Shown: positions 2,007 to 59,382 of the stretch, one piece after another | How the letters are laid out: each line of letters opens with the position of its first letter | Numbering within the stretch: position 1 is the first letter of the stretch | Virus record (IMG/VR): IMGVR_UViG_3300018891_000001 | Span: 151,871-215,870 of that record | Strand: one strand, 5' to 3' | Length of the DNA: 64,000 nt | The notes under the pieces: generated by a model | Told to the model about the DNA's origin: nothing | Databases searched by the model: none | The model's input: the letters and a program-made list of their open reading frames with translations, nothing else | Translations under genes and position numbers: made by a program

Positions 2007-2107
2007 AAAAGTTTCACCTCCATTGTCATAAGACGGGCTACACCTCTCTATATATATAATACACAACTGTAATGCATTTCATACGACAAAAACGGAGGAA
2101 TACAAAA

Positions 2108-2257
2108 ATGGAAGGCATCGTTCTCTTGGTAGGTCAGATTGGTGTTGTTTTAGCTGGTTTTATAGGCACAGCTTCCGCCATCAGCTGGTATCACAACGTA
2201 GGAGGGAAGAAAAATGACAGATCTAGTAGTCCGTTGTCAAGCAAGAACGTACGATAA
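2108..2257 (+). CDS. Small membrane protein, first gene of FtsK module
   Basis: GGAGG SD before MEGIVLL; one TM helix. Confidence 0.55.
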   Translation: MEGIVLLVGQIGVVLAGFIGTASAISWYHNVGGKKNDRSSSPLSSKNVR

Positions 2258-2765
2258 TCGACTGATTCAAGTTGTTGTATCAGAATCAAAGAAATCTGCA
2301 ACCATCGATAAGGATGATTATTATACACCTTTTATTCAAGCAGCGGCAAAGGAGGTGAAACAGTACCCCCTCATTACGCAAAGAAAAATATTTCAACTAT
2401 TGACAGCCGCACAAATCGGACTCAGTTCTCTCGTTGTTACCACCGAAGCCCACGCCGAGGAGAGAATCCAATTTCCGATTCTCGAGAAGGCATACGAATT
2501 AGATATTCTTCCAAGCGAGATTGTGAATCTTCTTATTCAGATGATTATCGGGTGCGGGATTCTCGCAGTCGCTTTCGCCATGCTATGCTTCATGATCGCA
2601 GGAACGTATGCCATGATCGGACAAGTGGACAAAGCACGAACATGGTCTGTCAACATCATCAAAGGACTCGGGCAAGTATTAGTGGGTCCAGCCATTATTC
2701 TACTGTTAACAACTTTAGCCGGACTCATATTCCGCAATGTTCCCGGCTTAGACATCTTCTTTTAA
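2214..2765 (+). CDS. Membrane protein with VirB2/TrbC pilin-like C-terminal two-TM domain
   Basis: AHA signal-like site, two TM helices, KARTWSVNIIKGL pilin-like pattern. Confidence 0.5.
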   Translation: MTDLVVRCQARTYDNRLIQVVVSESKKSATIDKDDYYTPFIQAAAKEVKQYPLITQRKIFQLLTAAQIGLSSLVVTTEAHAEERIQFPILEKAYELDILPSEIVNLLIQMIIGCGILAVAFAMLCFMIAGTYAMIGQVDKARTWSVNIIKGLGQVLVGPAIILLLTTLAGLIFRNVPGLDIFF

Positions 2766-2767
2766 GA

Positions 2768-3802
2768 GTGGGAGTACCGTTTTCTGTCTTATCTCTAAAT
2801 GCCGTTCCACAAACTGCATCGGCACATACATGGTTCAATCCTATTCATTTTATTCCGGGAGCTGAAGAAACACTAAACAAATGGGACATCATCGCCAACC
2901 ATGTTGTGAATGTCATTGAATGGTTCAAACATTTCCGTGAAAATATCTTACAAGTTTCAGTGGATTTCATGACATGGAGTTTTGAAGCAATTACAAACGT
3001 GGTCTTGTTTACACCTGTTATCTTTTTTAAATCAGAGTGGTTTTCCAATAACATTCTTATGTTTACTGGACTGTCAGTGGCAATGTCATCTGTTCTTACC
3101 ATGTTTGAGGGCATAAAACGAATCCTAAACAAAAATCACACCAAAATGGATCGCATCTCATGGCGATTTCCACTTGTAATTTTAGGAGCCGGACTTGCAC
3201 CTTTAGGATTTCAAACCATCTTTTCGATCTTAAATGAATTGACAGAAATGATTATCAGCATCACCAGAGCCCAAATGAATGAGGGTTTAAAATCAATGGA
3301 ATTTAGTGAAGCTGCCTTTTATGAGTTTCTTGCTTTTATTGGTTTTGATATTGCTTTAATTGGTATGATGATTCCTATTTTTCTGCAAAACTTTCGACGG
3401 TGGTTTGATATTTTAGCATTAGGGGCTATAACTCCAATTGCACTATCTTGTTGGATGTTTAAATCTTATGAGCATTATTTTCGCATATGGTGGGAGCATT
3501 TAAAAAAATGTTCACTTGTTCAATTAGTGTATGCGGTTTTTCTTTTACTTATTGGAGGGTTAATGTTTGGAGCTAAGCCGCCCGATGATGAAGGAGAACT
3601 TTTGATTAAAATGGGAATTGTCATAGGAGGATTATGGCGCATGAGCCAACCACCTGCCATTTTACGCCGCTACTTGGATACAGGAACGGACATTAAAGGA
3701 ATGTGGAAAGGAGCTGGAGATGCTATCACACCACATCCACTTCTACGAAAAGGATTCCAATTATTTAAAAAATCATCTACTTCAAGAGGAGGCACAAAAT
3801 AG
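2768..3802 (+). CDS. Polytopic VirB6/TrbL-like membrane protein (start uncertain)
   Basis: Many TM segments; R.F.I..L...TPIAL..W......F..WW pattern; GTG just after the upstream stop chosen as start. Confidence 0.55.
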   Translation: MGVPFSVLSLNAVPQTASAHTWFNPIHFIPGAEETLNKWDIIANHVVNVIEWFKHFRENILQVSVDFMTWSFEAITNVVLFTPVIFFKSEWFSNNILMFTGLSVAMSSVLTMFEGIKRILNKNHTKMDRISWRFPLVILGAGLAPLGFQTIFSILNELTEMIISITRAQMNEGLKSMEFSEAAFYEFLAFIGFDIALIGMMIPIFLQNFRRWFDILALGAITPIALSCWMFKSYEHYFRIWWEHLKKCSLVQLVYAVFLLLIGGLMFGAKPPDDEGELLIKMGIVIGGLWRMSQPPAILRRYLDTGTDIKGMWKGAGDAITPHPLLRKGFQLFKKSSTSRGGTK

Positions 3803-3803
3803 A

Positions 3804-3920
3804 ATGGAAGTATTATTAGTGGCTGGAACCATTATGATTATGACCAACACTATGGTGCTGTTAATGTTAGCACCTACTATTTTAAAAGAGGTGAAGCATG
3901 GTGCCACTCGGAAATTTTAA
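3804..3920 (+). CDS. Small hydrophobic peptide
   Basis: GGAGG SD, MEVLLVAG...; coupled to the FtsK start. Confidence 0.45.
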   Translation: MEVLLVAGTIMIMTNTMVLLMLAPTILKEVKHGATRKF

Positions 3921-6204
3921 ACGACTCTTTCAACCTAGTTTAATTCAAAACGAAAAAGACGTATCTTATCATTTGCCTTCTTTATCACGAGCAGAAGCAA
4001 AAGCCCTTCTCTCCGCTCCCTTAGCGGGGGGAGGGGTCTTTGGCCTAGAAGCCCACCAAACAAAAGACCATGAAAGTCTTATTTTTTTTGCTCCGCCTTA
4101 CTATAAAGTGGAATGGAACCTCGCAGACCGAGACGCTGTTTTTGAAAATCTTGAAACCTATAAAAAACAAATCACCATCATGCAACTATATACGAGTAAA
4201 TCCTCATTGTTTCCTCTCTCCATTGAATATACTCAGTCTTTTTGGGAACAGGTTCGGCAATTTGCAGCTGATGATATCGGAATTATTTATCAAATTGTAC
4301 TTGCATACCGACAAGACCGATGGAAAGAACGAATCAAGGAGCAATATCAACTGTATCTAAGTGGAATCCAATCTCCCGCTGATCAAAAATGGGTACGCAG
4401 TATTCAAAATCGAATTAATCACTCCTTAGATCATCTCTTGCAATGGGAGTTCAAATATGCCCCTATTCCTGAAGTGGAACAGAAACTAAAAGAAAATGGA
4501 TTTCGATATAGTATTCGGCTCATTCTTTATGGCGGTAATCGAGCGAGGCGAAGAAAACTAATACATGAAATACAACAAATTTTACGAACCATGGAGTATA
4601 TCAATGAATGGAAAGTGAATACCTTTTTTGCGTTTGACGATATTATTCAGAATATCCAAAAACGCAAGCTCGATAATGTAGGAAAGCAACAAGTCTTATG
4701 TGTATCCGAATTGCTGCCATTTCTGATGTCCGAACATGTAGTGTACATTGAAAAACCGGCCATAAAAAAGGTAACAAAAACAAAGGTAAAAAATCCATTC
4801 GATCTCCTGCCGATAGGCAAGAAAATTCAACAAGTCGATGGGAGTCAAATAGCTCAAAAATTTGTTTACGCTCTCCAAGAGTTAAAGGTAATTAAAGAAG
4901 AAATTGTTGCTAAACGAGTTCAATGTGGGCCAATCATGATGAAAATCACCTTTGATTTACCGAAGGGGATGCGTCTTTCGGATATAACAAAGAAAAATAT
5001 GATTGAGGATATTCAGACTCATATGGGAGTCAAACATCTACAGATCTTACAAGGGGAGGATACGGGAGAATTCGATATTATGTTGCCACAAGAAAAAAGG
5101 CAAAAAATCTTTTTACGAGATTATGTGGATACCTCTGAATTTATGGAGTTTGCCGGACAACATCCACTTCCATTCTTTGTAGGGGTGGACGAAATAGGAC
5201 GCTCCATTTTTCGTTGTCTAAGTGAAATTCGTCATATTCTTGTAGCAGGAACAACCGGATCCGGCAAAAGCGTGTGGATGAATCAACTTATTCTTACCTT
5301 GTTATTAATTCGCAAACCCGATGAACTTCAATTTTATATGATTGATCTAAAACAAGTGGAACTCACCTGCTTTCAAGATTTCCCTCATGTGCGAGAAGTC
5401 ATCACAGATGCGAACAAAGCTATTCACCTACTTAGGAAAATCCAAAAAGAGATGGACAGACGTTATCAATTATTTAGTGAAACAGGAGTAAAAAACATTG
5501 CCTTGTATAATAGAAAACATCCTCATCAAAAGCTCCCTTATATTGTGTGCATTATTGATGAATATGCGGAATTAGCATTACGAACGGATAGTATACATGA
5601 ACTCGTTCAAAGTATGGCACAACTCGCAAGGGCTGCTGGCATCCACTTGATTATTGCAACCCAAGATCCACGAGTTGAAGTAATCCCAGGAATTATTAAG
5701 TCCAACATGCCGGGGAAAATCGGTTTCCGTTGCTCTAATGGAAACAGTTATCTAACATTTTTAAATACGAAACCACCTTTTAACCTATTAGGAAACGGGG
5801 ATGGGGTCATGAGCTTTGAGGGGCAAATAGAGGAGCATATTCGCTTTCAGGGATGTCTGATTATCGATGATCCCAAAAACGAAGGGCTTGAAAGTCAGTT
5901 GATTGCACAAATCGCAAGTCATATGGACGACTATGAAGGAGTAGATTTACCAGAATTAGAGGAAACAGAAGAAGTGCATATAGAAGAAACAGAGACAGAA
6001 ATAGACCGACTTAAACGCATTATTGCTCAAACAGGGGAAACAAGGGTATCACAACTAAGGGAAATGATGAAAATTAACATCAATCGATTGAATGATTTGA
6101 TGAGGGAACTCGCAGAAGAAGGGTGGCTGCAAAAGCCAGAATCCAAACAGCAAGGATACCAATTAATTGCACCAGAAGAGGAATTGGAAAAGTGGAGACA
6201 ATAA
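3898..6204 (+). CDS. FtsK/SpoIIIE-family DNA translocase
   Basis: HILVAGTTGSGKS, MIDLKQVEL, IIDEYAEL, ARAAGIHLIIATQ, LLGNGDG; C-terminal gamma-like winged helix. Confidence 0.92.
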   Translation: MVPLGNFKRLFQPSLIQNEKDVSYHLPSLSRAEAKALLSAPLAGGGVFGLEAHQTKDHESLIFFAPPYYKVEWNLADRDAVFENLETYKKQITIMQLYTSKSSLFPLSIEYTQSFWEQVRQFAADDIGIIYQIVLAYRQDRWKERIKEQYQLYLSGIQSPADQKWVRSIQNRINHSLDHLLQWEFKYAPIPEVEQKLKENGFRYSIRLILYGGNRARRRKLIHEIQQILRTMEYINEWKVNTFFAFDDIIQNIQKRKLDNVGKQQVLCVSELLPFLMSEHVVYIEKPAIKKVTKTKVKNPFDLLPIGKKIQQVDGSQIAQKFVYALQELKVIKEEIVAKRVQCGPIMMKITFDLPKGMRLSDITKKNMIEDIQTHMGVKHLQILQGEDTGEFDIMLPQEKRQKIFLRDYVDTSEFMEFAGQHPLPFFVGVDEIGRSIFRCLSEIRHILVAGTTGSGKSVWMNQLILTLLLIRKPDELQFYMIDLKQVELTCFQDFPHVREVITDANKAIHLLRKIQKEMDRRYQLFSETGVKNIALYNRKHPHQKLPYIVCIIDEYAELALRTDSIHELVQSMAQLARAAGIHLIIATQDPRVEVIPGIIKSNMPGKIGFRCSNGNSYLTFLNTKPPFNLLGNGDGVMSFEGQIEEHIRFQGCLIIDDPKNEGLESQLIAQIASHMDDYEGVDLPELEETEEVHIEETETEIDRLKRIIAQTGETRVSQLREMMKININRLNDLMRELAEEGWLQKPESKQQGYQLIAPEEELEKWRQ

Positions 6205-6224
6205 TCTCCACTTTTTTGTGGTAT

Positions 6225-6253
6225 TTTACAGAATAGCAAAACTATGATACTAT
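6225..6253 (+). promoter_or_regulatory. sigma-A promoter of rep
   Basis: TTTACA-N17-TACTAT with TG extension. Confidence 0.6.
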
Positions 6254-6295
6254 GAAAAGAGAGAGAAAAAACAAAATTCTACAAAAATAGACAGG

Positions 6296-6360
6296 AAAAA
6301 ACCCTTTACTTAGGGGGTAAAGGGTTCGAAAGGTAATATGCGCATATACAATATTCAACT
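6296..6360 (-). ncRNA. Predicted ~65-nt countertranscript (copy-control antisense RNA)
   Basis: Perfect - strand promoter at 6367-6395; ends in hairpin AACCCTTTAC/GTAAAGGGTT plus U tract; antisense to the rep leader. Confidence 0.7.
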
Positions 6361-6366
6361 ATCTTT

Positions 6367-6395
6367 ATTATAATGCGTATTCCTTTCCCTGTCAA
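6367..6395 (-). promoter_or_regulatory. Consensus sigma-A promoter driving the antisense RNA
   Basis: TTGACA-GGGAAAGGAATACGCAT(17)-TATAAT. Confidence 0.85.
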
Positions 6396-6415
6396 AAAGG
6401 AAAGGAGATTTTTTT
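6380..6415 (+). terminator. Conditional attenuator hairpin containing the rep SD
   Basis: TTCCTTTCC/GGAAAGGAG stem followed by T7, immediately before the rep ATG. Confidence 0.65.
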
Positions 6416-6418
6416 CGA

Positions 6419-6970
6419 ATGGAACACGAAAAACTGAATATCTTTGATCCGAATGTCATTTACTACGTGCAACTGCCAACAGGAAAGACTCGGAGATTGA
6501 GTGAAGAAGAACTAGAAAAAATAACACTCAATTCCCCCAACAACATTCCTGAGTTAAACGGTAAAAAGACATGGATCAGTAACTACGTTGCTACGTTCTG
6601 GATGCCGTTTATGAAGCCAGGGCCATTTGCGGTTTACGTTCAATTGCAGAAAATGGCATATGGGGATAAAGATCATGCATTTCCATCTGTTCCGTATTTA
6701 GCCATGATTCTGGGTATTAGTGAACGAACTGTACAAAATTACATTGATCATTTGGTGGATCTGGGATTCGTAATTGTATTAGAACGGTTTGAAGCACAAA
6801 GCAACCGGCAGCTAAGTAATTTATATTTGCTATCAACAACGACTCCGTTTCTTCCTAGGGAGAAGTATGAGAAGTTGCCGAAGAAGTTACAAAGAGAACA
6901 TGACCGATTTATGGATTACATAAAGTTTAAAAAGATTTTACACGAAGAACGAATTCCTGACTATGAGTGA
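6419..6970 (+). CDS. HTH replication initiator (HTH_36-like Rep)
   Basis: AFPSVPYLAMILGISERTVQNYIDHLVDLGFV...SNLYLL; adjacent iterons. Confidence 0.75.
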   Translation: MEHEKLNIFDPNVIYYVQLPTGKTRRLSEEELEKITLNSPNNIPELNGKKTWISNYVATFWMPFMKPGPFAVYVQLQKMAYGDKDHAFPSVPYLAMILGISERTVQNYIDHLVDLGFVIVLERFEAQSNRQLSNLYLLSTTTPFLPREKYEKLPKKLQREHDRFMDYIKFKKILHEERIPDYE

Positions 6971-6971
6971 T

Positions 6972-6998
6972 TAGCCCGCATTAGCGGGCTATTTTTTT
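6972..6998 (+). terminator. rep terminator
   Basis: TAGCCCGC-ATTA-GCGGGCTA-T7. Confidence 0.85.
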
Positions 6999-7008
6999 AT
7001 GCTATTTT

Positions 7009-7252
7009 CTATCCACAAAAATCTGTGGATATGTGTATAAAAGGGGATGAAAATTTTACAGGGGGGAAACCGGGTGAAAAAATTGCAGGGGGATATCTAG
7101 GGGGTGAAAATTTTACAGGGGGATATTTAGGGGGTGAAAAATTTGCAGGGGGATTTATACACAAGAGGGGAGGGTGAAAATTTTACGGGGGTGTAATTTT
7201 TTCAGGGAAAGGATGAAAAATCTGCGGGGAACGACTGAAAAATCTGCATCCG
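7009..7252. repeat. Replication origin: ~8 iterons and 4 DnaA boxes
   Basis: GG(G/A)TGAAAAWTTTRCAGGGG-like repeats, three at 30-bp period; DnaA boxes at 7009-17, 7024-32, 7032-40, 7155-63. Confidence 0.8.
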
Positions 7253-7457
7253 AATAAATACTAAGAAGAAGAAAGTCAATTTGAAGAAGTTTTTTAATGA
7301 ATATCCCTTGTCTACCTTTTCTCTGATAAAAGACATTGCAGTTAGAACTATGTTCTAAATGCACAGTCGAAATGAGAGTGCAAGGGAAATTCATAAGAAG
7401 AAGAAATGGAGACAAAAAAAGCAAATGCGACAATGCATCTGCTTCGTGATTGGATAC

Positions 7458-7682
7458 TTATTTTTTTAACATGAATCGTGGAATGGCATAGAAAAGAGCT
7501 GAAAGGGCTAAACCGACCAAAAAACTACCTAATGTAGCATTCGGATCAAAAAATGAACCAATGGCTGAGCACAAAAACATAGTGCCCAGAATATTTGGAA
7601 TCAAACCTTTCCACCCATGCATCATATGTAACTTCCAAAAAGCTATGACTAAGATAAAGAATAAAATTGTGCTGAGACTCAT
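7458..7682 (-). CDS. Small three-TM membrane protein
   Basis: GGAGG SD; hydrophobic. Confidence 0.6.
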   Translation of the reverse strand: MSLSTILFFILVIAFWKLHMMHGWKGLIPNILGTMFLCSAIGSFFDPNATLGSFLVGLALSALFYAIPRFMLKK

Positions 7683-7839
7683 CTTATTCCTCCTACTAAA
7701 TCAAGTAAAAAGAAGACCTATGCCTTAAAAGCAAAGGTCTCAAAGTTTGGTGAATACAAAGTTATAAAATAACTAGGTTGGAAGATAATAAAAGAGACAG
7801 CATCATTATATCCAATCCTAAGCGATTCGTCTAGAAAAA

Positions 7840-9132
7840 TTAGAACAGCGAAAATTCCATTTGCCCTTCAATTACTTTACGACTTTTGAATTCTGCCATT
7901 TTGAGTTCCACCTCATACACTGCTGTTTCGCATACATGATGAGACGAAATACGATAAGAGGCTAATCGCTGCTGTCGTTCTTCTAAAAATTTTTGATTGC
8001 TTTCTACAAGCTGACGAATGATTTCAGCTTCAGAGCGACTTAATTTCGCATTAAACGGTGGATTGGTTGTAATACATTCAAACTTGATCTCTCTAGCATG
8101 GGCTTTTATAATTTGAATTTTTCGATCATCCGAAAGAGAATTCCACGGTTGATGCAAATCCTCCTCATATTGAAAAATCTCACGTTTTCGCAAATCTACT
8201 GGATGAACAAAAATATCTATTTGTTTACTTTCTTCTTCGAAAATCCGGATAGGTGCTCGGTATTCTCCCAATAGTGAATTTCCCCAATAAATACGAGTAT
8301 CCGTATTAAACTCAAAATATCGGTGAATGGTTTTTGTTTCTGGGTTAATATGCAATCCCATAATCGGTTTTGGCACATATAAAAGAGAAGGCAAAAATAA
8401 AAAGGCTTGAATACAAGCCACTTTTACCATCGTTAAACTTAAATCAGCACCTACTAAATTTAAGCAATTGGATGGCAGCACCATAGCAGCACCACCAATA
8501 CAAGGTTCAAACTGACTATCCGTAGGAGAAGAATTTAGCATCATATTGATAGCTTCTGTTACTTGAATAGGAGTTGGAAAATAATCCAAATGTCCCTTTT
8601 GGCCATGTTCAGCCACAAAAGTAGACAATACATCCGTGGGCTCTAAAAATAATAAATCCAAACTGAATTCCCGATACAACTCTTCCCAAAGAGAATCTGG
8701 AATCGAAGGACGTTTGCAATAGCTAATGCCTAATGCATAACCAATCCATTCAATAAAATCCGTAATCCGATATCCCCGATGATATACTCGATCCATGCAT
8801 TTGGTTAACATTTTATAAGCAGGAGTATTCATGATGGGCGAAGACCGAACCGGATTTTTCGGCATATCTCCATCTTGGTAAGATCCTTTGGCCAAGATAG
8901 AAAGCCACGCATACCAACGACCATACAGCATGGTTTCAATCATCAAGCCCATTCCACGCATCCAGCCAAACCGGTACGAATCTTTCACATCTTGGGGTGG
9001 TTCTGTCCAAAGAGGAGAGTATTGAAGTTCTAATAATTTTCGTTGAATCTCCAGCCATTGTTCTGGGGAAAGGGAAGCACAGAACTCTTGGCCACGACGT
9101 TCCGATTCCAATCGACCATATGATTTTTTCAT
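7840..9132 (-). CDS. N6-adenine DNA methyltransferase (HsdM-like, orphan)
   Basis: YFPTP, FEPCIGG (motif I), GADL, GNSL, TNPPF (motif IV). Confidence 0.75.
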   Translation of the reverse strand: MKKSYGRLESERRGQEFCASLSPEQWLEIQRKLLELQYSPLWTEPPQDVKDSYRFGWMRGMGLMIETMLYGRWYAWLSILAKGSYQDGDMPKNPVRSSPIMNTPAYKMLTKCMDRVYHRGYRITDFIEWIGYALGISYCKRPSIPDSLWEELYREFSLDLLFLEPTDVLSTFVAEHGQKGHLDYFPTPIQVTEAINMMLNSSPTDSQFEPCIGGAAMVLPSNCLNLVGADLSLTMVKVACIQAFLFLPSLLYVPKPIMGLHINPETKTIHRYFEFNTDTRIYWGNSLLGEYRAPIRIFEEESKQIDIFVHPVDLRKREIFQYEEDLHQPWNSLSDDRKIQIIKAHAREIKFECITTNPPFNAKLSRSEAEIIRQLVESNQKFLEERQQRLASYRISSHHVCETAVYEVELKMAEFKSRKVIEGQMEFSLF

Positions 9133-9484
9133 GATTACACCTCAGATAGATGTTTGGTAATACAAATCTCTAAATCTGTTTCATTCATATCAGGGGAGGA
9201 GAGCCACGATTTTCGAACCCATTTATAGCTTTCCAATTCTTCCTTACGATAAACAGCTTTCCAATACTGACCATGAACACTATCTAGAAATATCGAACCG
9301 TGATGATCTAAATAAAAGACAAGGTGAGCTTTTCGTTTTGCCACAGTAAATCCTCCTGTATGCCGGATTTCATTGTTAGTTAACATAAGATAAATTATCG
9401 GAAGTTAATGATTAAAAAGATTTATTGTCTCATTTTATTAAGTATTCTTGTGTTTTTGAGACAGAAAAGAAAAAGTGAAAGCCA

Positions 9485-9688
9485 TTAATTAGCTTTCACC
9501 AATTCATACTCATCTTTATTTAATACTATGTCACCGCCAAATGATTCTTCATAAACCGTAACCGATTGATCTTCTTTATCATAGTATTTTACTTCATAGA
9601 TCTTTCCGATTAAATGTTCAATCGACAATTGTGCGACAGCAATACGTTGTGTGTCAGGTTTACTTGCGATGACTCTAACCTTCATCAT
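9485..9688 (-). CDS. Hypothetical protein
   Basis: GGAG SD; overlaps the upstream stop. Confidence 0.55.
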   Translation of the reverse strand: MMKVRVIASKPDTQRIAVAQLSIEHLIGKIYEVKYYDKEDQSVTVYEESFGGDIVLNKDEYELVKAN

Positions 9689-15828: not shown

Positions 15829-15868
15829 CTCCTTTTTTAAAGGGTGTGTAATGCATTACACACTTGGT

Positions 15869-17197: not shown

Positions 17198-17265
17198 TCT
17201 AGTATCCTCCCTTTATATGTTTCTTTTTTTCACCCAATAACCCGGAGGGTTTGTAATACATTACA

Positions 17266-42631: not shown

Positions 42632-42696
42632 TGTAAGGCATTACAATGTAACGCCTTTCATAATGTTAGTATAGTCAAAAACTTGGGGAAATACAA
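42632..42696 (-). promoter_or_regulatory. sigma-A promoter with two downstream operator copies
   Basis: TTGTAT-N17-TATACT; TGTAAGGCATTACA and TGTAACGCCTTTCA. Confidence 0.65.
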
Positions 42697-48613: not shown

Positions 48614-49261
48614 TCAGTTGGTTTTCCGATGTGTCTCCCCTTTTCTCTTTCGAATAACAGTTAAGCGTCGTTGAGTTCCTTTTTCTGGACGACCTAATCG
48701 ACGTGCAATCTCACGATAATTCATACCACTTTGCCACCAAAACCAAGCTGCTTCATCTTCCTCCTGTGTCCAATTCGTAGGACGTTTTACCTGTTTTGCT
48801 TTTGTGATTTCTTCATCTAGCCATTTTGGTTCTGGGAGAATGATTCCTCGTTTGATATGTGCAAAATTTACTCGTTCTTTATGTAATTCGATCCATTTCC
48901 ATAAATCATAGGGATCAATGAAATAACGATATCGCTTATCTGATTTTGTTACTTTATGTAATTGTTTGGCTTTTAGACCAAAATGGCAAATCCATTGAAT
49001 CACGGTGCGATGATTGACACCAAGAGCTTCTGCTACTTGTGGAGGAGATAAAAGACCACCTGCAAGATTCATATCTTGAAATCCCATTAATTCTTTATAC
49101 TTTTGATGGATGGCCTCTTTACTGCGTTTTAAATGTCTTATAAGATAGCTCATACTTTTTATTCCATATGATTCCAATAAAAACTCTTTATCCTTATCGC
49201 TCCATATCCTTTTCTGATTGAGATAAGAATGTTTCTTTGACTGCTGCAAGAGATTCACCAA
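48614..49261 (-). CDS. Multi-HTH (Myb-like repeat) DNA-binding protein
   Basis: WSDKDKEFL, VAEALGVNHRTV, WTQEED...YREIARRLGR. Confidence 0.7.
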   Translation of the reverse strand: MVNLLQQSKKHSYLNQKRIWSDKDKEFLLESYGIKSMSYLIRHLKRSKEAIHQKYKELMGFQDMNLAGGLLSPPQVAEALGVNHRTVIQWICHFGLKAKQLHKVTKSDKRYRYFIDPYDLWKWIELHKERVNFAHIKRGIILPEPKWLDEEITKAKQVKRPTNWTQEEDEAAWFWWQSGMNYREIARRLGRPEKGTQRRLTVIRKRKGETHRKTN

Positions 49262-51107: not shown

Positions 51108-51847
51108 TTAATAAGAAACAATACTCTTTTCAATATTTAGCAACGAATTGCTAGTAATTTTCGCTGATGCTTTTGCTTCCAAAGATTTCACCGTTGCTTC
51201 TAATGCATAGTAATATCCTAAAAATCGATCTTCTAAATCAAATAAGTTAACTGTAGGCGAATGATAAAAATCTGGTGCCGGATAATTTCGGGCATACTGA
51301 ATACCCGCTGCACGACGAGCTTGTTCATTAGGCCCTTTATAGTAATCTTCTAGAACGTTTTTAATCAACCGCTGAATTGCATCTTTGTTTCGTCGTGCCC
51401 GACCAAAGTCATACAACGCTTTGGTGTATTCTTCTTCAACACGAACATTGAAATGATGCAAAGCTGTCTTATCCACTGACGGCACTTTTAAAGATCGATT
51501 CATTTGCTCATACTCATCAATTAAGATATCCCAACGTGTAAAATCTTCTTGTAGCAAGCGTTCCAAAACATTCATACACATTCACGCTCGCAATAAAGAG
51601 ACAACGAAGTAGTATCATATTCATCACAAAGTCGCTGGATTTTGTTAGCATAAACATGCATAATTGAACGAGCTAATACTGGAGCTAGTTCTGGAAAAGC
51701 AGTAATGCGAAGAAGAAGCTCATCCCTGACCTCTTTCTTCGCTTCTTCATTCCAAAACTCTTCATGCTCTACAAATCGAATCAATCTCGCCGCCATATAG
51801 TCTGATTGTTTTGCAATGCCCGCATTGTATAGTGACAAGAATGACAA
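51108..51847 (-). other. Two hypothetical genes (51108-51575, 51572-51847)
   Basis: Coupled ORFs. Confidence 0.55.
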
Positions 51848-51858
51848 CCCCTTTTTTC

Positions 51859-52377
51859 TTATTTTGTTTTCACTATATAAGCAACTGTTCCATCATCGAG
51901 AGGTTGTGACACAACAATCTTTCTTGGATCCAAACCTGCTTGAGCGGCATGAGCTTTTCGAAGTTCTTCTTCTAATTGATCAATTTTTTGATAAAGTAAT
52001 TCCTTATCCCTCTTGAGTTGCTCAATTTGTGCCTCTTTGGTTTTTAATATCGTTTCAAAGCGATTTGCACTTGAACTCAATTCATCAATCATCTTAAAAA
52101 TCTCATGCACTTGCTTGTCCGGATCCGGAATCCCATAATATACGATTTCATTGGATTCCGATTTCTCTACAGATGGAACAATGCCTATGACCCCCTGTTT
52201 ACGTAATTTTTTCACAGCACGATGAACTGTGGCTTCACTGAGTCCCAATTTTTCACCGATTTGCTTCATAGGCTCCCGTATTGGGCCCTCTTTCCTTTCG
52301 GTTTGTTCTTTAATATACTGGTAAACCTGAATTTCACTTTGACTCAGAATTTCCAATACCTGTTCTTCTGTCAACAT
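51859..52377 (-). CDS. Winged-HTH regulator with coiled coil
   Basis: MKQIGEKLGLSEATVHRAVKKLRKQGVI. Confidence 0.8.
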   Translation of the reverse strand: MLTEEQVLEILSQSEIQVYQYIKEQTERKEGPIREPMKQIGEKLGLSEATVHRAVKKLRKQGVIGIVPSVEKSESNEIVYYGIPDPDKQVHEIFKMIDELSSSANRFETILKTKEAQIEQLKRDKELLYQKIDQLEEELRKAHAAQAGLDPRKIVVSQPLDDGTVAYIVKTK

Positions 52378-52399
52378 CCTTGATACAACCCCTTTTCTC

Positions 52400-52760
52400 T
52401 TTGTAATACATTACACATTATGAGTGATTATCTAGTAATATACCTCATTTAAAAATAATTTAAACATAATGCATTACAGTTTATCAAGGATTTTCGACAA
52501 TTAGGTATATTTTACTTTAAATTCCTTTAAAATCCTGCGATTTATAGGACTTTATTCCTGCCTACTTGTTTAAATATACCCTTTTCAGCAATAAGTGTCA
52601 ATATTTCAAGGATAAACTATATTTCGCAAATTTCGACGTTAATCGACAGAACGTATGTTCCCATCAACTGTTCTGGTATTAATATACTCTGTTCGGTAAT
52701 AAGTGTCAATAGTTTGATAGCCTATCATATTTCGCAAATTTCGACATTCACCGACAAAAT
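52400..52760 (-). promoter_or_regulatory. Complex control region: duplicated sigma-A promoters, LexA box, Spo0A boxes, two operators
   Basis: TTGACA-N17-TATATT at 52573-52601 and 52681-52709; GAACGTATGTTC at 52649-60; TGTCGAA at 52493-99 and 52740-46. Confidence 0.75.
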
Positions 52761-52790
52761 TTATGATAAATTTGGTATTAGAGGCATATT

Positions 52791-53072
52791 TTAGAAACAG
52801 GATAAATCGATTTCTTGTTGTTTCTTGCGACGACGCTCTGTGCGACGACGTTCTTTTTCACGCTCAACAGCATCTATATCCACTACACCAATGCCACGTA
52901 TACGAGCAATTTCCATAATCTCATCAATATTATAGACACGATAGTTATTTCTCGGATTGCGTCGAGCTGGGGGAATTAGATGATTTTCCTCCCAATACAT
53001 GATGGTATCTCGGTGAACAGCTAGCATGAGTGCTGCTTGATTTAGTGTGTAATCCTGTTTGTATTCCTTCAT
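52791..53072 (-). CDS. MerR-type HTH protein
   Basis: AA.ML.VH.DTI.YWE...LIP..R...NYRVY. Confidence 0.8.
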   Translation of the reverse strand: MKEYKQDYTLNQAALMLAVHRDTIMYWEENHLIPPARRNPRNNYRVYNIDEIMEIARIRGIGVVDIDAVEREKERRRTERRRKKQQEIDLSCF

Positions 53073-53087
53073 TTGTTACGAACTCCT

Positions 53088-53702
53088 TTACAGTTTACTC
53101 TCCACCTTCTGCTTTGCTCGTAACATATGATGACAATACTCTTGAAACCATTCTTGACTGCTCATAGTATACAACGTTCGATACGTCGTAATCATTTCAT
53201 ACCGATCGAGAAGGACAGATGTATAACCTGCACAATTGATAGAAGGATCAAAGTGTTTACCAACATCATAGCCTAATGCAATAATCATTTGTGGTTGCAC
53301 ACATAAAATTTCCGATAACAAATGATGTTGACAGCGTTCAGGAGTTGAACTTTCTTCACATTTGATTAAAGATGTAAAATACACATCATCTAATGAAAAC
53401 TTTGCCCATATCAATGTATCAGCCAGCAGCTTACCTTCTTTGGTTTGGAAATCGATATCACTGGGTGTTTCTCCAATAATCATGACAGACGCATCAAAGT
53501 TGCTTAATTCTAATGGTTTAACATATCGTCTATTATTGCAAGCAAAGCATTGGTGAATGCTTGTTTTAATATGATGTGGTGTTACAGTTTTGTACATATG
53601 TTCTTTATCAAGAATTTGATCATAAAATCCTGGCTCAAGAGCCGTTTTCCGAAATAGATCGGTTTCCAAATCAAAGGGCAGGTTTTTCTCGATTACTGAC
53701 AT
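53088..53702 (-). CDS. Uracil-DNA glycosylase family 4-like protein (degenerate)
   Basis: C..C, MIIGETP, YFTSLIKC, C...L..EI..VQP..IIALG. Confidence 0.7.
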   Translation of the reverse strand: MSVIEKNLPFDLETDLFRKTALEPGFYDQILDKEHMYKTVTPHHIKTSIHQCFACNNRRYVKPLELSNFDASVMIIGETPSDIDFQTKEGKLLADTLIWAKFSLDDVYFTSLIKCEESSTPERCQHHLLSEILCVQPQMIIALGYDVGKHFDPSINCAGYTSVLLDRYEMITTYRTLYTMSSQEWFQEYCHHMLRAKQKVESKL

Positions 53703-53740
53703 CTTGACCCCTCCTCACATAAGGGAGCAAAAAGCTCCCT

Positions 53741-54919
53741 TTAGACTAACGTATTTTCATGATATTCTGAGTCTAGTTCTTCTTGAGAATCATCTTGCTC
53801 AACCACGAATTGAGCATCTTTTGGAATACGACCCTGTACAATATCATTAATATAGTTAAATAGAGCCGGGGATTGTTTTAAAACCGCTTCAACGGTGTCT
53901 TTCCCCATCCATTTAAGTTCATTTCCTGAAGCATCTTTGTATGGATTTTTGACATCTTCTCCTAAGTAATACCATGCTCCTGCACGTTTAATAATATCCA
54001 TATCCATAGCTACATTCATAATATCTTTAATAACATCAATTCCTGTATCCCAATAATAATCAAATTCCGCTTGAGTGAACGGACGAGATACCTTATTCTT
54101 TTTCACACTAATTGTGATCGTTTGGCCAATAAAGGCATCTCCTTTTTTGATTTCTTTTCGACGCACATCCAAACGAACAGAAGAATAAAACTTCAATGCA
54201 CGGCCACCCGGTGTAGTCTCTGGATTCCCATACATTACGCCGACTTTTTCTCGAATCTGGTTAATCATAATGACTAAACAATTATGTTTGTAAGCCAATT
54301 GTGCTATCTTTGGCAAACACTTAGAATTTAAGCGAGCTTGTAATCCAATATGATTATCTTCTGCAGATCCATCAATAACAGCTTTAGGAATGAATGATGG
54401 TAAACTATCACCAACAATCAAGCCCACTTGATTAGAAAGAATCAGTGTTTCCATTAAGTCATAGCCTTCTTCGCCACAGTTTGGTTGTGCAATTAGCATA
54501 CCTGTTTCTTTTGAAATATCCACTCCAAGAGCTTTTGCATGGAATGGGTCTAAGGCATGTTCCGCATCAATGAAAACCGCTTTTTTGCCGTAAAATGGAT
54601 GACCCGGTTGTTTTGCATAATACTGAAATGTAGCAACCGTTTTTAAAGCTACCGTTGTTTTTCCAGAGGATTCTGGTCCATAGATTTCTACCAATCGTCC
54701 CCACGGAAGGCCGCCAATTCCTAAAGCGAAATCTAAGGAAGGGATTCCCGTAGATACAGGCTGGACCTTAACAGTCTCTTCTCCTTCAAATGTATAAATA
54801 GAACCTTCTCCCATTCGCTTATTAATCATGGCAATTAAATCGGCATTACTAGCCATTCCTGTTGATGAAGTTTCAGTTGTGCTTGTTGCTTGTTTATCAT
54901 CTTTCTTCTTTCTGGTCAT
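53741..54919 (-). CDS. recA: Recombinase RecA
   Basis: GPESSGKTT, FIDAEHALD, INQIREKVGVMYGNPETTPGGRALKFYSSVR. Confidence 0.97.
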   Translation of the reverse strand: MTRKKKDDKQATSTTETSSTGMASNADLIAMINKRMGEGSIYTFEGEETVKVQPVSTGIPSLDFALGIGGLPWGRLVEIYGPESSGKTTVALKTVATFQYYAKQPGHPFYGKKAVFIDAEHALDPFHAKALGVDISKETGMLIAQPNCGEEGYDLMETLILSNQVGLIVGDSLPSFIPKAVIDGSAEDNHIGLQARLNSKCLPKIAQLAYKHNCLVIMINQIREKVGVMYGNPETTPGGRALKFYSSVRLDVRRKEIKKGDAFIGQTITISVKKNKVSRPFTQAEFDYYWDTGIDVIKDIMNVAMDMDIIKRAGAWYYLGEDVKNPYKDASGNELKWMGKDTVEAVLKQSPALFNYINDIVQGRIPKDAQFVVEQDDSQEELDSEYHENTLV

Positions 54920-55316
54920 TTATGTCACTCCATCCTTTATAAGTCTCAATAAATTGGTCAATAGCATCTTTTGCCGCTTTTAAATCCCGAAGCGGCTGTA
55001 AATACGCTTCATCAATTTCTATAGGTTGCTGTGTGGCATTTGCCTTTTGCTGCATTGTTCGAATTTGTTTAGTCATATGAGCTCCACGGTATTGAAGAAT
55101 TCGTGACATCCATTGAGCCATGACAATAAGCATGTGATCAGGAACTTCTTCTTCTTGTTTCATGATTTTGACACACTCTTCAAGTGTATTATCAATCATA
55201 CGTACCTTGGCTGTCTTTTTTGGCATACCTCGGTCATGATAATAATCAAAAATTCCATACATAAATCGAGCCAAAGAATTGGCAGGATTAGGCTTTTTGC
55301 GTGCCAAGTGATTCAC
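54897..55316 (-). CDS. Hypothetical protein
   Basis: ORF overlapping the recA start. Confidence 0.55.
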   Translation of the reverse strand: MNHLARKKPNPANSLARFMYGIFDYYHDRGMPKKTAKVRMIDNTLEECVKIMKQEEEVPDHMLIVMAQWMSRILQYRGAHMTKQIRTMQQKANATQQPIEIDEAYLQPLRDLKAAKDAIDQFIETYKGWSDINDQKEER

Positions 55317-55390
55317 TCCATTCTATATACGGCAAAATATGACGAGGTATTATAGGAAATACATCAAAGGGGGAACATCCCCCCTTTGTT

Positions 55391-56143
55391 TTAAGCTCCT
55401 TGTGGTGGGGCTGGCGGAAATCCGCCATTTGGTGCACCTACTGGAGCTCCATAACCGCCACCTGGTGGGTTAGGTGGAAATCCTCCTTGCGGAGCAGGAG
55501 GTGTATTTGATTGCGCCGGATTTGGCGGGAATCCTCCTCCTTGTGGTGGAGCCGGAGGTGGTGTAAATCCTCCCTGTTGCTGTTGTGGAGATGGATTGAA
55601 ATTACCTTGTGGCGGTGCTTGGAATCCACCTTGATACTGTCCTGTTGGTTGTTGTTGTGCTCCTTCACTGCCTTTTGGCATTTCTAATCCTACAAGCTCA
55701 GTAACTTTAATAGTTGGATAATAACTATAAGAACCATCTTGATTCTTTTGTTGGCGAAGTTCAGGGATTCCTTCTACGAACACTCGACGACCTTTCGGAC
55801 AATGATTAATCAAGAAATTATATTTACTATCGGCTCCTTCGTTGCCCCATACTTCAATAAACCAAAAATCAGTTCCTGCTTTTTCGCTACGATGATTAAT
55901 TGCGATCTTAGATGTACCCACTTTTGAATTGTTTACTATTTTTGAAGTTGGATCCTGGGTTAAACGTCCAATGACTTTGATTTTGGCATAATTATCAAAT
56001 CCAGAGCCATTACGTTGACCATTAGATTGCTGATCCATCGGATAGCCGCCTTGATTTGGATACCCTTGATTTGAGTACCCTTGATTTCCATAAGACTGAT
56101 TTCCATAAGACTGATTTCCATAAGGTTGACCGTAGTTATTCAT
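55391..56143 (-). CDS. ssb: Single-stranded DNA-binding protein with low-complexity tails
   Basis: IGRLTQDP, TDFW.IEVWG, KG..V.VEG OB-fold. Confidence 0.85.
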   Translation of the reverse strand: MNNYGQPYGNQSYGNQSYGNQGYSNQGYPNQGGYPMDQQSNGQRNGSGFDNYAKIKVIGRLTQDPTSKIVNNSKVGTSKIAINHRSEKAGTDFWFIEVWGNEGADSKYNFLINHCPKGRRVFVEGIPELRQQKNQDGSYSYYPTIKVTELVGLEMPKGSEGAQQQPTGQYQGGFQAPPQGNFNPSPQQQQGGFTPPPAPPQGGGFPPNPAQSNTPPAPQGGFPPNPPGGGYGAPVGAPNGGFPPAPPQGA

Positions 56144-56179
56144 GTCATATACCTCCTAAAATAAAAAATTATTTTTCAC

Positions 56180-57013
56180 TTAATGTCCCGGAGGGGCTGA
56201 AAAAGATAAATAATAATAAATCACTTTGTCAGTTTTCTTGATATCTGTGACTACCAAAACATGAACAGTATGATCTTGAAACTGTACCTGCAACCTTTCT
56301 CCTATATGAATATCTCGGTTGACAGGATACATAAAATCATGCTCACTTTTATCTGGGAAAACTAACACATTTCTCATGAAATGTTGTCTCCATTCTTCCT
56401 AAAATCTTTTACATCATATGCAAAAACCGACACATCTCTTTTCTCTTTTCCTTGAATACGTCGGCTAATAATATTAACAAACCCTTCGATAAATACATCC
56501 TGACCAATTTGAAATTGATCCATAAAGGTGTTCATGATTTCTTCTGTCACAAACACATGAGTTTGACCCACTAAGTCATCTAAAATGACAATATACATAG
56601 GAAATTCTTCGTCAACCGGAGGAACTATGTTCAGAATTGTACCTCCTACGATCACTTCCTGTTCTTGCACAACTTGATACTTTAGTTGTTCTGAAAAATG
56701 TGTAACATGTTTCTTAAATTTACTCAGCTTTTGTTGAATGTTTAATTTACTCATGGGTTTTCCCTCGCTTTTTTATATATTCTGCATGCAATTCTGCAAC
56801 GAGGGCTTTTACTTCATGAGGATAAATAATACCTTTTCGAATCAATAAATTTAATAAGGCATTAACCAAGATATAAGAAGTGTGAATTTCGCTATCTCGA
56901 TTTAAAACCGCCTCTTCTTGGGGCGAAAATGGAATACTATCTCTGGCCGATTCACCAAACACTTGATCACGAAAATCAAAAAAATCATCATCTCTTTCCC
57001 CTAAAACAACCAT
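56180..57013 (-). other. Three small genes (56180-56377; 56374-56754 OB-fold-like; 56747-57013)
   Basis: Coupled ORFs; 56374 shows VGG.I...LDD.VG...V.IEG. Confidence 0.55.
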
Positions 57014-57027
57014 GTCTCCAACTCCTT

Positions 57028-57713
57028 TTATTTCTTATCCAGAATTTTGACTTGCACCATTACATCCCCCATTGAAACATGAGCATGAGGTACGTAATAG
57101 TCGATATCATACCCTTTGATCAAGCGACCTGTATCATCTGCTCGACGCTTTTCAGTGCGTCCATCCGGCCATTTAATAAGCACCCACGTACCAAGCGGAA
57201 TAATATTAGGATCTACAGCAATTGTAACTCCTTCTTCAGTAGGTCGCCCACTCGCAGTAATGCCATAGCCCGGATCGCCTGGACGTTTTCCAGTAGACTG
57301 ATAGTTATTATCATAAAAGGTTAAACGAAAATAAATCCATTCCCCTTCTCGTTGACCACGGAAAACTACGGGGTGCTTTTGAACTTTTTTTCTAATTCAG
57401 CTACCTTTTGCCTATAAACCTCTAATCTTCTCCGGAGGTCTTCAGTCTCCTTAGTTAGTCGATCGATTTCCATTTCAGACTGCTCTAATAAACCATTCAC
57501 CTTTTTCATTTCCTGATGTAATTGTTGATTTTCTTGAAAAAGGTCTTCATTTTTTTCAAGCACTTCTGTGTACTTTTCGCTCAACTTTTCGTGAGACTTA
57601 CGAACCTGTTTTAAGTCACTTTTGAACGAATAAAAATGAAGGGCTAGAGCAATAGAAGAAACCGTCGTTCCTGCTAGAATTAAGCGAGTTATCGTACGTG
57701 TCTTCTTCTTCAT
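57028..57713 (-). CDS. Membrane-anchored coiled-coil plus 3D-domain (lytic transglycosylase-like) protein via predicted -1 frameshift (~228 aa)
   Basis: A_AAA_AAG at 57390-57384; -1 frame encodes GITASG..IAVDP.IIPLG..ADDTG.LIKG..ID and has no start codon of its own upstream of the domain. Confidence 0.8.
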
Positions 57714-57819
57714 GCTTCGACTCCTTTATTTTATTCCCCTGTATCACTTCTCCCCAAGTTTATCATAAAACTTGGGGTAAATGCAAGGCATTACATCAAT
57801 ATATTACTTGTAATGCCTA

Positions 57820-59382
57820 TCAATAAAATATTTTCTTTAATAAAGAAAAAGTTTTCCCTAACTCTTGAAAGCATTGATAATCAATACAATAAATAATGTA
57901 AGCTAAAATTAGTTTGCATGCTTCTTCATTATTGTCTTTAGGAAATAAATATCCGCTTTGATAGATCTGTTGCTTAAATACATCACGTGTGATTCCACAT
58001 TCTTTTTCGATAAAAGAAGCAATTTCAGGGGTAGCTTTGATTCCTTGTTCGTTCCATAATTGAATAACATAGCAGCATTGAAAAAACAAAGAGGTGCTCA
58101 TGTATTGGTGCACTAATTCCATGTATTCACCTATACAAGTTGTTCTATTAGATCATGGTATTCCTCGCTTAATTCACCTTTCAATTCAGATAATATGTGA
58201 TCAAGCCCATAAAATCCCCAGCAACTATCAATGTGTTCTCCTTCATGTGTTTCAAGAATGTACCCGTAAATGTCTCCAGTTAAGTACTGATCATAAGTTT
58301 TGACTTCGGCTTCCAAAATATCTTCAGCTTGTTGAAGAGTCAAACCCTCTTTTTCTAAATCTTTTACAGGCACATAAATATATCCTACTTGTCCACTATC
58401 CCATGGACATGAAAAAGGAGAAGTTCTCATAGTAATCCCGCTGTGATCATATAAATAAAGCGGCAACATAACTACATGCTCCTCAATGGTATCCATTAAT
58501 TCGTCCATGCTCATTTCTTCCAATACTTCTTCTTCAAGTTCAGCTAATTCCATAGCTAGACTCTCTAAGAAATGACGAGGATCCGAATACGAATGAGAAT
58601 CACCTAAGTTATATCGATGATGAAAACAAACCATGGTACCTAAATTATCAAAATCTTGTCGTGGACTCCGAGCATCATCATCTTGTACAATCTTTAAAAT
58701 AAAATGTTCATTTTCAGCTTGTCGAACCACATAGCTCATCATTATGGCCTCCTTTTTATTGGTTTATTTTTTAATTGAGCATAGGCTCAAAATACAAACC
58801 TTGTTTGTCTTTGTTAATCATTATTCTTTTGTCTTTTTGCTTTCTTAAACTGTTGTTTTCCATAATAATAAGCAGCTTTTCCGACATCTCGACTTAATTG
58901 ACGTAAAAGAGCTGCTCCAGCCATTAGAGCAGCTTTTATCAGTACTTGCTTCATTCCTGATTCTCCTTCTCATGAGTTTCTGCAACACCCATTATTTCTT
59001 TTAAATCAGATAGCGGAAGAGCTTCATCATACAGATCAAAATATTCAAATTCCTCATAATACGGTGCCACAAAATCATGTACAACTTTATGAAAATCCGG
59101 CACTAGATCATAAGAAATGCGACCATCCTCATCCAGATACATAGGTTTATAATTCTTTGGATCGCATTCGTTAATCAGATTAAGATGTTCATCAAAAATC
59201 ATAAAATCGACATGATCACCAGGAATCATAAAATAGCAAATTTCCGGCAAAAAATAAGGCTGATATTGTTCTTGAATCAGCTTAGGAAAATGATTAGCAA
59301 AATCCTCTCGCAAATTATCGATATATTGCTGTTTTATTTTAAGATATTCTTGATGCAAGCGTTGAGTTACTTCTGAGTACAC
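57820..59382 (-). other. Hypothetical genes (57820-58122, 58131-58742, 58951-59382)
   Basis: ORFs with SD; 58131 carries a LYLYDHSG...WDSGQVG motif. Confidence 0.55.

Follow-up and report, generated by a model that had tools for sequence, protein, structure and literature searches.

A recurrent 14-bp palindrome as the probable operator of an element-encoded repressor in jumbo phage-plasmids of Bacillaceae and Paenibacillaceae

The 64-kb window considered here comprises positions 151,871−215,870 of the 215,870-bp IMG/VR record IMGVR_UViG_3300018891_000001, the ends of which overlap by 61 bp; the assembly is therefore circular. Genes of the record (a crude set of our own, comprising 232 genes that cover 88% of it) are arranged in two blocks, one on the minus strand extending from 159.7 kb through the record end to 20.2 kb, and the other on the plus strand at 20.4−159 kb. 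The window harbors genes for replication and recombination, i.e., a DNA polymerase III beta clamp, a DnaG-type primase, SNF2 and UvrD helicases, ThyX, a single-stranded DNA-binding protein (SSB), RecA and a uracil-DNA glycosylase (UDG), and the plus-strand block encodes a myovirus virion with a major head protein, a large terminase, a 974-aa tail sheath and virion proteins of 1,400−2,300 aa. Spread over this genome is a 14-bp palindrome, TGTAATGCATTACA, which would be the operator of a global repressor encoded by the element itself, a probable member of a family of ~140−260-kb phage-plasmids of Bacillaceae and Paenibacillaceae. Based on sequence comparisons, we assign a probability of about 0.6 to this reading, in which the likeliest binder is a winged-helix protein encoded in the window.

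Occurrence and placement of the palindrome

With up to two mismatches allowed, the palindrome is found at 10 sites in the window (2068, 15847, 17252, 22954, 26012, 42632, 45412, 52402, 52465 and 57782; Table 1), compared with 0.40 expected from 100 dinucleotide-preserving shuffles, of which the largest count was 3 and none reached 10. The original prediction, in which a master-repressor regulon was proposed from the window alone, listed these copies and three more (42647, 51051 and 57809), and a copy is found at every coordinate; the latter three have 3 mismatches each and count only as weak or half sites. The copy at 15847 does lie within a perfect 20-bp palindrome, as had been noted (GTG and CAC flank the motif). 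A scan of the whole replicon, which had been suggested as a check, yielded 31 sites with at most two mismatches, distributed genome-wide. The phenomenon consequently extends beyond the span first described and is not specific to the window; the earlier reading had missed that the regulon covers the whole 216-kb genome, virion genes included.

Across the element family the consensus is TG(T/A)AA(T/C)GC(A/G)TT(A/T)CA. Common variants (TGAAATGCATTACA and TGTAACGCATTACA) alter one half only, and in high-GC elements one half is often TGTAAC. An RNA copy of the 14-mer folds with only −0.5 kcal/mol, and Rfam gave no match at the palindromes. This low stability, together with variants in one half that do not keep the pairing, excludes a hairpin or a terminator. 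A literature text search for the motif string returned a single match, in an unrelated paper on NFIL3.

All 10 window sites are located outside called genes or at gene junctions, in agreement with the intergenic placement originally described, and in the whole record nearly all good sites lie between genes. For six elements taken together, 97 of 127 sites are non-coding, compared with 13.8% of the DNA (binomial p = 4e-57). A −10-like hexamer ends 0−8 nt upstream of 61 of these 97 sites, which is the case for only 14.7% of random intergenic positions (odds ratio 9.8, p = 6e-27; promoters are here predicted, i.e., identified as matches to consensus sequences). Most commonly, a site is found 0−8 nt downstream of a TATAAT-like hexamer, which is often TG-extended, and 10−50 nt upstream of a Shine-Dalgarno sequence and start codon. 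In a conserved minority the site lies 8−10 nt upstream of the −10 element and covers the −35 element or the spacer, and a third placement is in short gaps within operons with no promoter nearby. With a spacing to the −10 element that is spread over 0−8 nt, the motif is no fixed component of the core promoter. The motif-bearing promoters mostly have poor −35 elements, as seen in a scan of intergenic promoters, and the operons behind the sites include those for replication, recombination, accessory functions and the virion.

Several individual placements that had been pointed out earlier were recovered. The sites at 17252 and 26012 directly follow TG-extended −10 elements, and the copies at 42647 and 42632 are found 7 and 22 nt, respectively, past a TATACT element. 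Two copies precede the winged-helix gene, and one copy is found in the 5′ part of a group I intron, upstream of the homing-endonuclease open reading frame (ORF). The site at 15847 has no −10 element nearby and is for this reason classified as intra-operon, where it is a possible roadblock to transcription. As a separate observation, the gene that the intron splits encodes a SNF2-type helicase, and the intronic LAGLIDADG ORF has a −10 element of its own in addition to the operator-like site.

Table 1. Palindrome copies, candidate regulators and other features (window coordinates unless marked as record coordinates; mismatches are relative to the 14-bp palindrome)
Position	Strand	Feature	Context
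2068−2081		operator copy, 1 mismatch (pattern scan)	7 nt downstream of TATAAT; precedes plus-strand operon of a small ORF, 2214−2765, 2552−3802 and FtsK-like 3898−6204
3898−6204	plus	FtsK/SpoIIIE-like translocase, 768 aa	
15844−15863		perfect 14-bp operator in perfect 20-bp palindrome	between beta-clamp gene and gene 15370−15828
15869−17197	minus	DNA polymerase III beta clamp	
17252−17265		operator, 1 mismatch	abuts TG-extended TATTAT −10; upstream of beta-clamp gene
19442−23993	minus	SNF2-type helicase gene, split	exon ORFs 22977−23993 and 19442−21868
21917−22212	minus	group I intron core	Rfam, 97.5 bits
22097−22924	minus	LAGLIDADG ORF	in intron
22954−22967		operator-like, 2 mismatches	5′ part of intron; 8−9 nt upstream of the TATTAT −10 that precedes the LAGLIDADG ORF
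26012−26025		perfect operator	1 nt after TG-extended TATAAT; 16 nt before start of 25567−25995 (minus)
29315−30379	minus	HTH protein, 354 aa, HTH_20/HTH_5, replication-initiator-like PHROGs	adjoins primase gene
30400−31509	minus	UvrD-type helicase, C-terminal ORF	567 nt between the two ORFs
32077−32862	minus	UvrD-type helicase, N-terminal ORF	
37413−40584	minus	conserved trio	AAA ATPase 38953−40584 (phrog_8638), DUF1257 38113−38496, DUF2997 37413−37643
42632−42660		two adjoining copies, 1 and 3 mismatches	after TATACT −10; upstream of radical-SAM/4Fe-4S gene 41784−42617 (minus)
45412−45425		operator-like, 2 mismatches, still a perfect palindrome, AGTAATGCATTACT	directly precedes ribosome-binding site of 44952−45392 (minus)
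45746−48601	minus	ubiquitin-like conjugation set	Prok-E2_D 46242−47018, ThiF/E1-like 47738−48601, weak Prok_Ub-like 45746−46219
51051−51064		weak copy, 3 mismatches, one good half-site	upstream of core gene 50453−51019 (minus)
51859−52377	minus	candidate repressor, 172 aa	N-terminal winged helix-turn-helix, ~60-residue coiled coil, small C-terminal beta domain
52402−52415, 52465−52478		operator pair, 1 and 2 mismatches	63 bp apart, just upstream of winged-helix gene
52565−52765	minus	two tandem 108-bp repeats	each with a TTGACA-17-TATATT promoter toward winged-helix gene; no palindrome
52791−53072	minus	rival binder, 93 aa, MerR-type DNA-binding domain only	last gene of SSB-RecA-UDG run
57782−57822		two copies, 2 and 3 mismatches	upstream of gene 57366−57713; downstream run (minus, short gaps) of 57028−57183, SSB, RecA, UDG and MerR-like gene
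141853−142179 (record)		RemA-like small DNA-binding protein (PF04025)	outside window; in all seven elements
142200−143714, 144950−145690, 147231−148451 (record)		DNA polymerase III alpha in three pieces	outside window; genes between
143710 (record)		operator-like site	overlaps end of first polymerase III alpha piece
145966−147042 (record)		gene with HNH homing-endonuclease repeats	between polymerase III alpha pieces

Relatives of the element and restriction of the sites

Cultured phages are related only remotely, with 33% identity between the tail sheath and its counterparts in MTATph1 (Moorella) and 0305phi8-36 (Bacillus). A nucleotide search with 20 kb of the window against cultured phages gave no match, nor did IMG/VR when searched for exact peptides of the winged-helix and FtsK-like proteins. 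Much closer versions of the tail sheath, 70−73% identical, are encoded by complete circular plasmids of B. licheniformis, B. paralicheniformis, B. halotolerans, B. cereus G9842 and B. thuringiensis. These circular plasmid relatives span 140−260 kb. In Paenibacillus plasmids the tail sheath is 45% identical, and one of the relatives used below is itself a plasmid of Paenibacillus rhizovicinus, while another fills the entire 194,705-bp contig of Oceanobacillus profundus DSM 18246. Because its close kin are complete ~140−260-kb plasmids of Bacillus and Paenibacillus, we conclude that the element most likely belongs to a family of jumbo phage-plasmids, transcribed by the sigma-A polymerase of the host. 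A small community of phage-plasmids from B. licheniformis with no known phage relatives, “pp_Blicheniformis”, has been described (Pfeifer et al., PMC7969092) and is presumably the same family. Of the plasmid relatives, pG9842_140 was noted to be without a recognizable minireplicon (PMC4219350).

Scanning IMG/VR with the pattern TATAAT-N(0-8)-motif retrieved several records of 190−229 kb, each of which was matched more than once. Five of these relatives have 12−19 sites each with at most one mismatch, where a reversed-pattern control gave 0, and in a 145-kb Bacillus thuringiensis plasmid the palindrome occurs at a similar density. The relatives are 191−229 kb long with a GC content of 0.34−0.50, and 95 of the 232 genes are shared at ~30−80% protein identity (about 45%). 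At this distance the sites are retained at particular genes: three genes, including the window gene 25567−25995, have a site before their orthologues in all six genomes compared, and another four, including the winged-helix gene, in five of the six. One gene of the virion block is preceded in three genomes by exactly the same layout of operator, 9 nt and TATAAT. The motif is at chance level in more distant kin, i.e., phages 0305phi8-36 and MTATph1, the 235-kb B. thuringiensis israelensis plasmid and a Clostridium plasmid, and in these four no homologues of the candidate binders were detectable.

The sites are also largely confined to the elements. In the O. profundus genome, 13 of 15 sites are located on the 194.7-kb element contig, and the remaining 4.6 Mb holds 2, as does the control; in B. 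thuringiensis lyx16, the 145-kb plasmid holds 10 of 11. Among 49 genomes of Bacillus species, 7 exact copies were found in six genomes (reversed control, 0), and the six loci that were inspected are all situated within SPbeta-like prophages or next to phage holin genes. Because the sites are restricted to the elements, the binder is most likely encoded there, and the idea of a host regulon was rejected on the chance-level counts of the motif on host chromosomes outside mobile elements. It is accordingly very improbable that the binder is a host transcription factor or a factor common to many mobile elements of Bacillus, even though the palindrome is found as a pair in SPbeta (see below) and at other prophage-like loci of Bacillus, and even though the cre site of CcpA and other LacI-family proteins, TGTAAGCGCTTACA, matches the palindrome in length and in the outer half-sites, TGTAA...TTACA. 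The center of the palindrome is GC, not the CG that defines cre and other LacI-family sites, and the hosts range from Oceanobacillus to Paenibacillus.

A parS-like centromere had been named as the alternative to an operator. Pfam searches of the 215,870-bp record gave no match to ParB_N (PF02195, for which control genomes matched), CbiA/ParA (PF01656) or tubulin (PF00091), ParM/actin-type motors not being searched for. Together with the dispersed, promoter-overlapping placement, the lack of these genes fits an operator and not a centromere, and the parS proposal was not upheld. A wider form of it, in which the palindrome serves chromosome organization through parS-like function, tethering or condensation and any effects on transcription are secondary, can draw on the palindromic, dispersed and element-specific nature of the motif and on the same searches, which revealed no other partition system; KorB of plasmid RK2 is a partition protein that doubles as a global repressor. 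We consider even this form highly unlikely, as the sites are unclustered, are locked to −10 elements and ribosome-binding sites, and are maintained operon by operon.

The same record gave no match to Phage_integrase (PF00589, tyrosine integrase), HTH_3 or Sigma70_r2. The lack of a CI/Cro-type HTH_3 protein, an integrase, ParA/B and a phage sigma factor would suit a regulator of lytic growth, i.e., a temporal switch or an activator at promoters with a weak −35 element, in which case the elements seen in isolates would be persistent infections. Most motif promoters do have a weak −35 element, in the conserved subclass the site covers the −35 element or spacer, and there are precedents for virulent jumbo phages persisting in isolates (10.1101/2024.12.31.630880). 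Yet most sites cover +1, just past the −10 element, which is the position of a repressor and rarely an activating one, and stable inheritance would better account for the recovery of at least ten complete circular plasmids from strains unrelated to one another. Moreover, TG-extended −10 promoters of Bacillus function without a −35 element. A lytic regulator thus appears improbable.

Candidate binding proteins and the proposed regulon

Four DNA-binding proteins are found in all seven elements examined, i.e., the winged-helix protein, a MerR-type protein, an HTH_20 protein and a RemA-like protein. The winged-helix domain of the first matches Pfam HTH_24 (1.4e-7). Among 22 homologues, no variation is seen in the recognition helix (SEATVHRA..KL) at residues S47, A49, T50, H52, R53, K57 and L58, or in the wing (SNEI.YYG) at N76, E77, I78, Y81 and G82, and those homologues that lie on long contigs are found on contigs of 140−225 kb. 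In an AlphaFold model (pLDDT 82), the winged helix is followed by a helix of 60 residues and a small beta domain. Modeled as a homodimer, the protein reached an ipSAE of 0.40 (best control, 0.00), a mark attained by 21 of 30 solved homodimers and by none of 23 proteins solved as single chains; contact agreement between runs was at least 88% and the partner pLDDT at least 74. The interface in the model is an in-register parallel coiled coil of residues 100−146. The modeling supports a two-fold dimer, which would fit a palindrome. No LexA-type cleavage domain was matched in a Pfam search with this protein.

Motif-like copies, some of which have 3 mismatches, precede the winged-helix gene in all seven elements, and in six of these they form a pair 45−63 bp apart, the proximal copy overlapping a −10 element in several. 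Farther upstream, the promoters in the two 108-bp repeats are the only ones with a perfect −35 element in the intergenic scan; these could drive the repressor gene or small RNAs, or belong to an origin. Strong promoters followed by operators are the layout expected of an autoregulated maintenance repressor, and the conserved copies lend support to the autoregulation originally suggested from the two copies in the window. The repeats are situated between the MerR-like and winged-helix genes, and each promoter in them is preceded by CGAAAT-TTG-CGAAAT.

From these data we infer a regulon of the following kind. A symmetric dimer would occupy ~30 operators at host sigma-A-type promoters, most of which have a TG-extended −10 and a weak −35 element; the majority of operators would cover the transcription start, a few the −35 element or spacer, and others would be positioned between genes inside operons. 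The bound dimer would block binding or escape of RNA polymerase, and at intra-operon sites it may stop read-through, much like the roadblocks of mycobacteriophage L5. Silencing would extend to operons for replication, recombination, accessory functions and the virion alike, and the episomal prophage would stay quiet, with negative autoregulation at the winged-helix gene from two operators behind strong promoters. What was proposed originally as a master-repressor regulon is borne out in that the motif is element-specific, non-coding, located at −10 elements and conserved before orthologous operons at ~45% identity, and in that the elements, as probable phage-plasmids, would have ~200 kb to keep silent; binding, repression, the identity of the binder and a role in lysogeny are what we infer.

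The winged-helix protein is the binder with slightly better than even odds. The earlier reading missed the neighboring MerR-like gene (Table 1), the product of which is an equally conserved rival binder, with ~69 conserved residues. Both proteins occur in the same seven elements and in the same ten PLSDB plasmids, and their phyletic profiles, being identical, do not discriminate between them. Comparison of the recognition helices with the T6/C6 variants of the operator is equally uninformative, because both candidates change together between only two clades (a low-GC Bacillus type and a high-GC Paenibacillus type). The MerR-like protein is, by comparison, an unlikely binder, and it is equally unlikely that some other protein of the element binds the palindrome; the rest of the odds falls to anything else.

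A variant of this reading keeps the operator function but assigns binding to the MerR-type protein, to another protein of the element such as the 354-aa HTH_20 protein, or to a core protein without annotation; the winged-helix gene would in that case only be one of the regulated genes, or its product would initiate plasmid replication. We regard this as unlikely on balance. The MerR-like protein matches MerR-family structures, including GlnR weakly (E 0.016), and GlnR and TnrA bind TGTNA-N7-TNACA, the half-sites of which are those of the palindrome. The 108-bp tandem repeats upstream of the winged-helix gene are such as an origin might have. However, the MerR-like protein consists of a ~69-aa domain only and has no conserved dimerization helix, which makes a perfect palindrome a less natural target, and its gene ends a run that lies behind an operator, so that the protein would shut itself off. 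The winged-helix protein, on the other hand, is modeled as a symmetric dimer and has conserved double operators at its promoter. Of the remaining proteins, the 354-aa HTH_20 protein is more likely an origin or primosome protein, and the RemA-like protein, the gene of which adjoins Cas4-like nuclease and polymerase genes, could be a further regulator. The protein encoded at 48614, which had also been listed as a candidate, was dropped, as only one of six relatives has a full-length homologue (27% identity). The earlier interpretation as a whole is supported in part, i.e., for the regulon and the winged-helix autoregulation, and unsupported for the parS alternative and the 48614 protein.

A number of observations weigh against a repressor of lysogeny with the winged-helix protein as binder. 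For roughly one in three intergenic sites there is no −10 element close by. The winged-helix protein resembles phage replication proteins of the HTH_36/DnaD type and matches a “replication initiation” PHROG, i.e., it could be an origin binder, and its top Foldseek matches are generic winged-helix proteins (the CodY DNA-binding domain and MarR-type proteins) at E ~4e-3 only; a sequence search of the PDB likewise gave generic matches. The MerR-like protein has an identical distribution and is better conserved (56−81% identity in the DNA-binding domain, compared with 31−55% for the winged-helix protein). No partition or lysogeny module was recognized in the searches for ParB_N, CbiA/ParA, tubulin, integrase and HTH_3, and the elements may instead reflect persistent carriage of a virulent jumbo phage, for which there is precedent (10.1101/2024.12.31.630880). 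The sequence is held only by DNA runs of a single biocrust metagenome study, with no RNA runs. Lastly, the same palindrome is found in SPbeta, which has neither candidate protein.

In SPbeta (NC_001884), a perfect copy at 77857−77870, annotated only as “palindrome”, and TGAAATGCATTACA at 77773−77786 form a pair between yopM and the AimR box downstream of aimP. The gene yopM is the first of the operon that encodes the SPbeta master repressor. Similar pairs are found at other prophage-like loci of Bacillus, beside holin and Rap-like genes. SPbeta encodes no homologue of the winged-helix protein or of the MerR-like candidate, the jumbo family has no homologue of the arbitrium and sro proteins, and a comparison of 55 kb of SPbeta with all proteins of the record revealed no shared regulator. 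All phages that match the SPbeta palindrome region are at least 96.8% identical and are therefore uninformative on conservation; the aimP−yopM palindromes are not mentioned in the literature found. The explanation would be either an additional factor shared by these elements or the reading of one co-resident element's operators by another. It is conceivable, if quite unlikely, that the palindrome is a regulatory word shared by unrelated mobile elements of Bacillus, the pairs in SPbeta-like and other prophages being read by the jumbo repressor or by a common factor, in which case one resident element could sense or control the lysis-lysogeny switch of another.

Several other features of the genome were noted. 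The UvrD-type helicase is encoded in two ORFs, a split that may reflect another intron or an insertion, and no Rfam match was obtained there at the gathering score. DNA polymerase III alpha is likewise encoded in pieces, with genes between them. The ubiquitin-like conjugation set is present in only three of five relatives and looks like an accessory module of the Bil type. The FtsK/SpoIIIE-like gene is absent from all five relatives and its product is ~34% identical to versions in SPO1-like Bacillus phages, and it is an accessory gene outside the family core. The trio of AAA ATPase, DUF1257 and DUF2997 genes is found in all relatives.

Significance and relation to known systems

These ~200-kb elements are common in Bacillus strains from food, soil and biocontrol. 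They are classified as “non-mobilizable plasmids” and lack a known replicon (PMC4219350), and no cultured phage represents them. One conserved operator and two or three candidate binders provide an experimental handle on how a giant phage may be silenced as a plasmid, which also bears on inducing or curing these ~200-kb elements. The operator is, in addition, an easy signature for family members, which a 20-base pattern recovered from IMG/VR and GTDB, and its copies in the arbitrium region of SPbeta could point to cross-talk between co-resident elements.

Within Bacillus, the nearest comparison is with SPbeta, in which the master repressor MrpR (YopR/SroF) acts on a repeated element, SPBRE, found at some ten promoters; in silico prediction of SPBRE preceded identification of the repressor by 24 years (PMC10516654). 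The corresponding SroF box of phi3T is AT-rich, asymmetric and 26 bp long (10.1101/2025.11.27.690993). Both systems would thus consist of a Bacillus prophage repressor and a repeated promoter element, but MrpR is a monomer with a tyrosine-recombinase fold, and the record that holds the window has no gene of the Phage_integrase fold (PF00589). The palindrome is not SPBRE, as SPbeta has only 2 copies of it, both near yopM, and SPBRE is found at nine or more promoters. An identification of the window itself with SPbeta was rejected because the two differ in genome size, in gene content and in the sequence of the box.

The other phage systems were compared by description. Phage P1 is a plasmid prophage silenced by C1, which has many operators scattered at the promoters of unrelated operons, including the region of the repressor itself. 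The likeness to the palindrome regulon would lie in a single repressor with operators scattered genome-wide in a plasmid prophage. The C1 operators are, however, 17-mers that lack symmetry and are recognized by a C1 monomer, and P1 encodes ParAB and RepA, whereas here we find a 14-bp palindrome, a winged-helix candidate modeled as a coiled-coil dimer and no ParB/ParA. The stoperators of mycobacteriophage L5, which are bound by gp71, number ~30 and lie in short intergenic gaps among early and late genes, some of them acting as intra-operon roadblocks; the third or so of the intergenic sites that have no promoter, e.g., 15847, are reminiscent of these. In contrast to the symmetric and mostly promoter-overlapping sites described here, stoperators are asymmetric 13-mers that are oriented with transcription and bound by a monomer. 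Repressor c of phiC31 binds a 17-bp inverted repeat (CIRs) at many intergenic, promoter-proximal positions, but phage, host and repressor are unrelated, and the CIRs are located mainly in the early region, whereas virion operons are included here.

Outside phages, KorB of plasmid RK2 is a global repressor of the ParB family with 12 palindromic OB sites around the plasmid, which works with IncC/ParA. It would resemble the present system in the control of many operons by a dispersed palindromic operator, and differs in that no ParB/ParA domain is found here. Should the winged-helix protein be the binder, it would probably be a new protein type among the few known phage master repressors with dispersed operators, and the regulon as a whole is probably best described as a dispersed-operator master-repressor system, the operator of which is new and the repressor probably of a new type.

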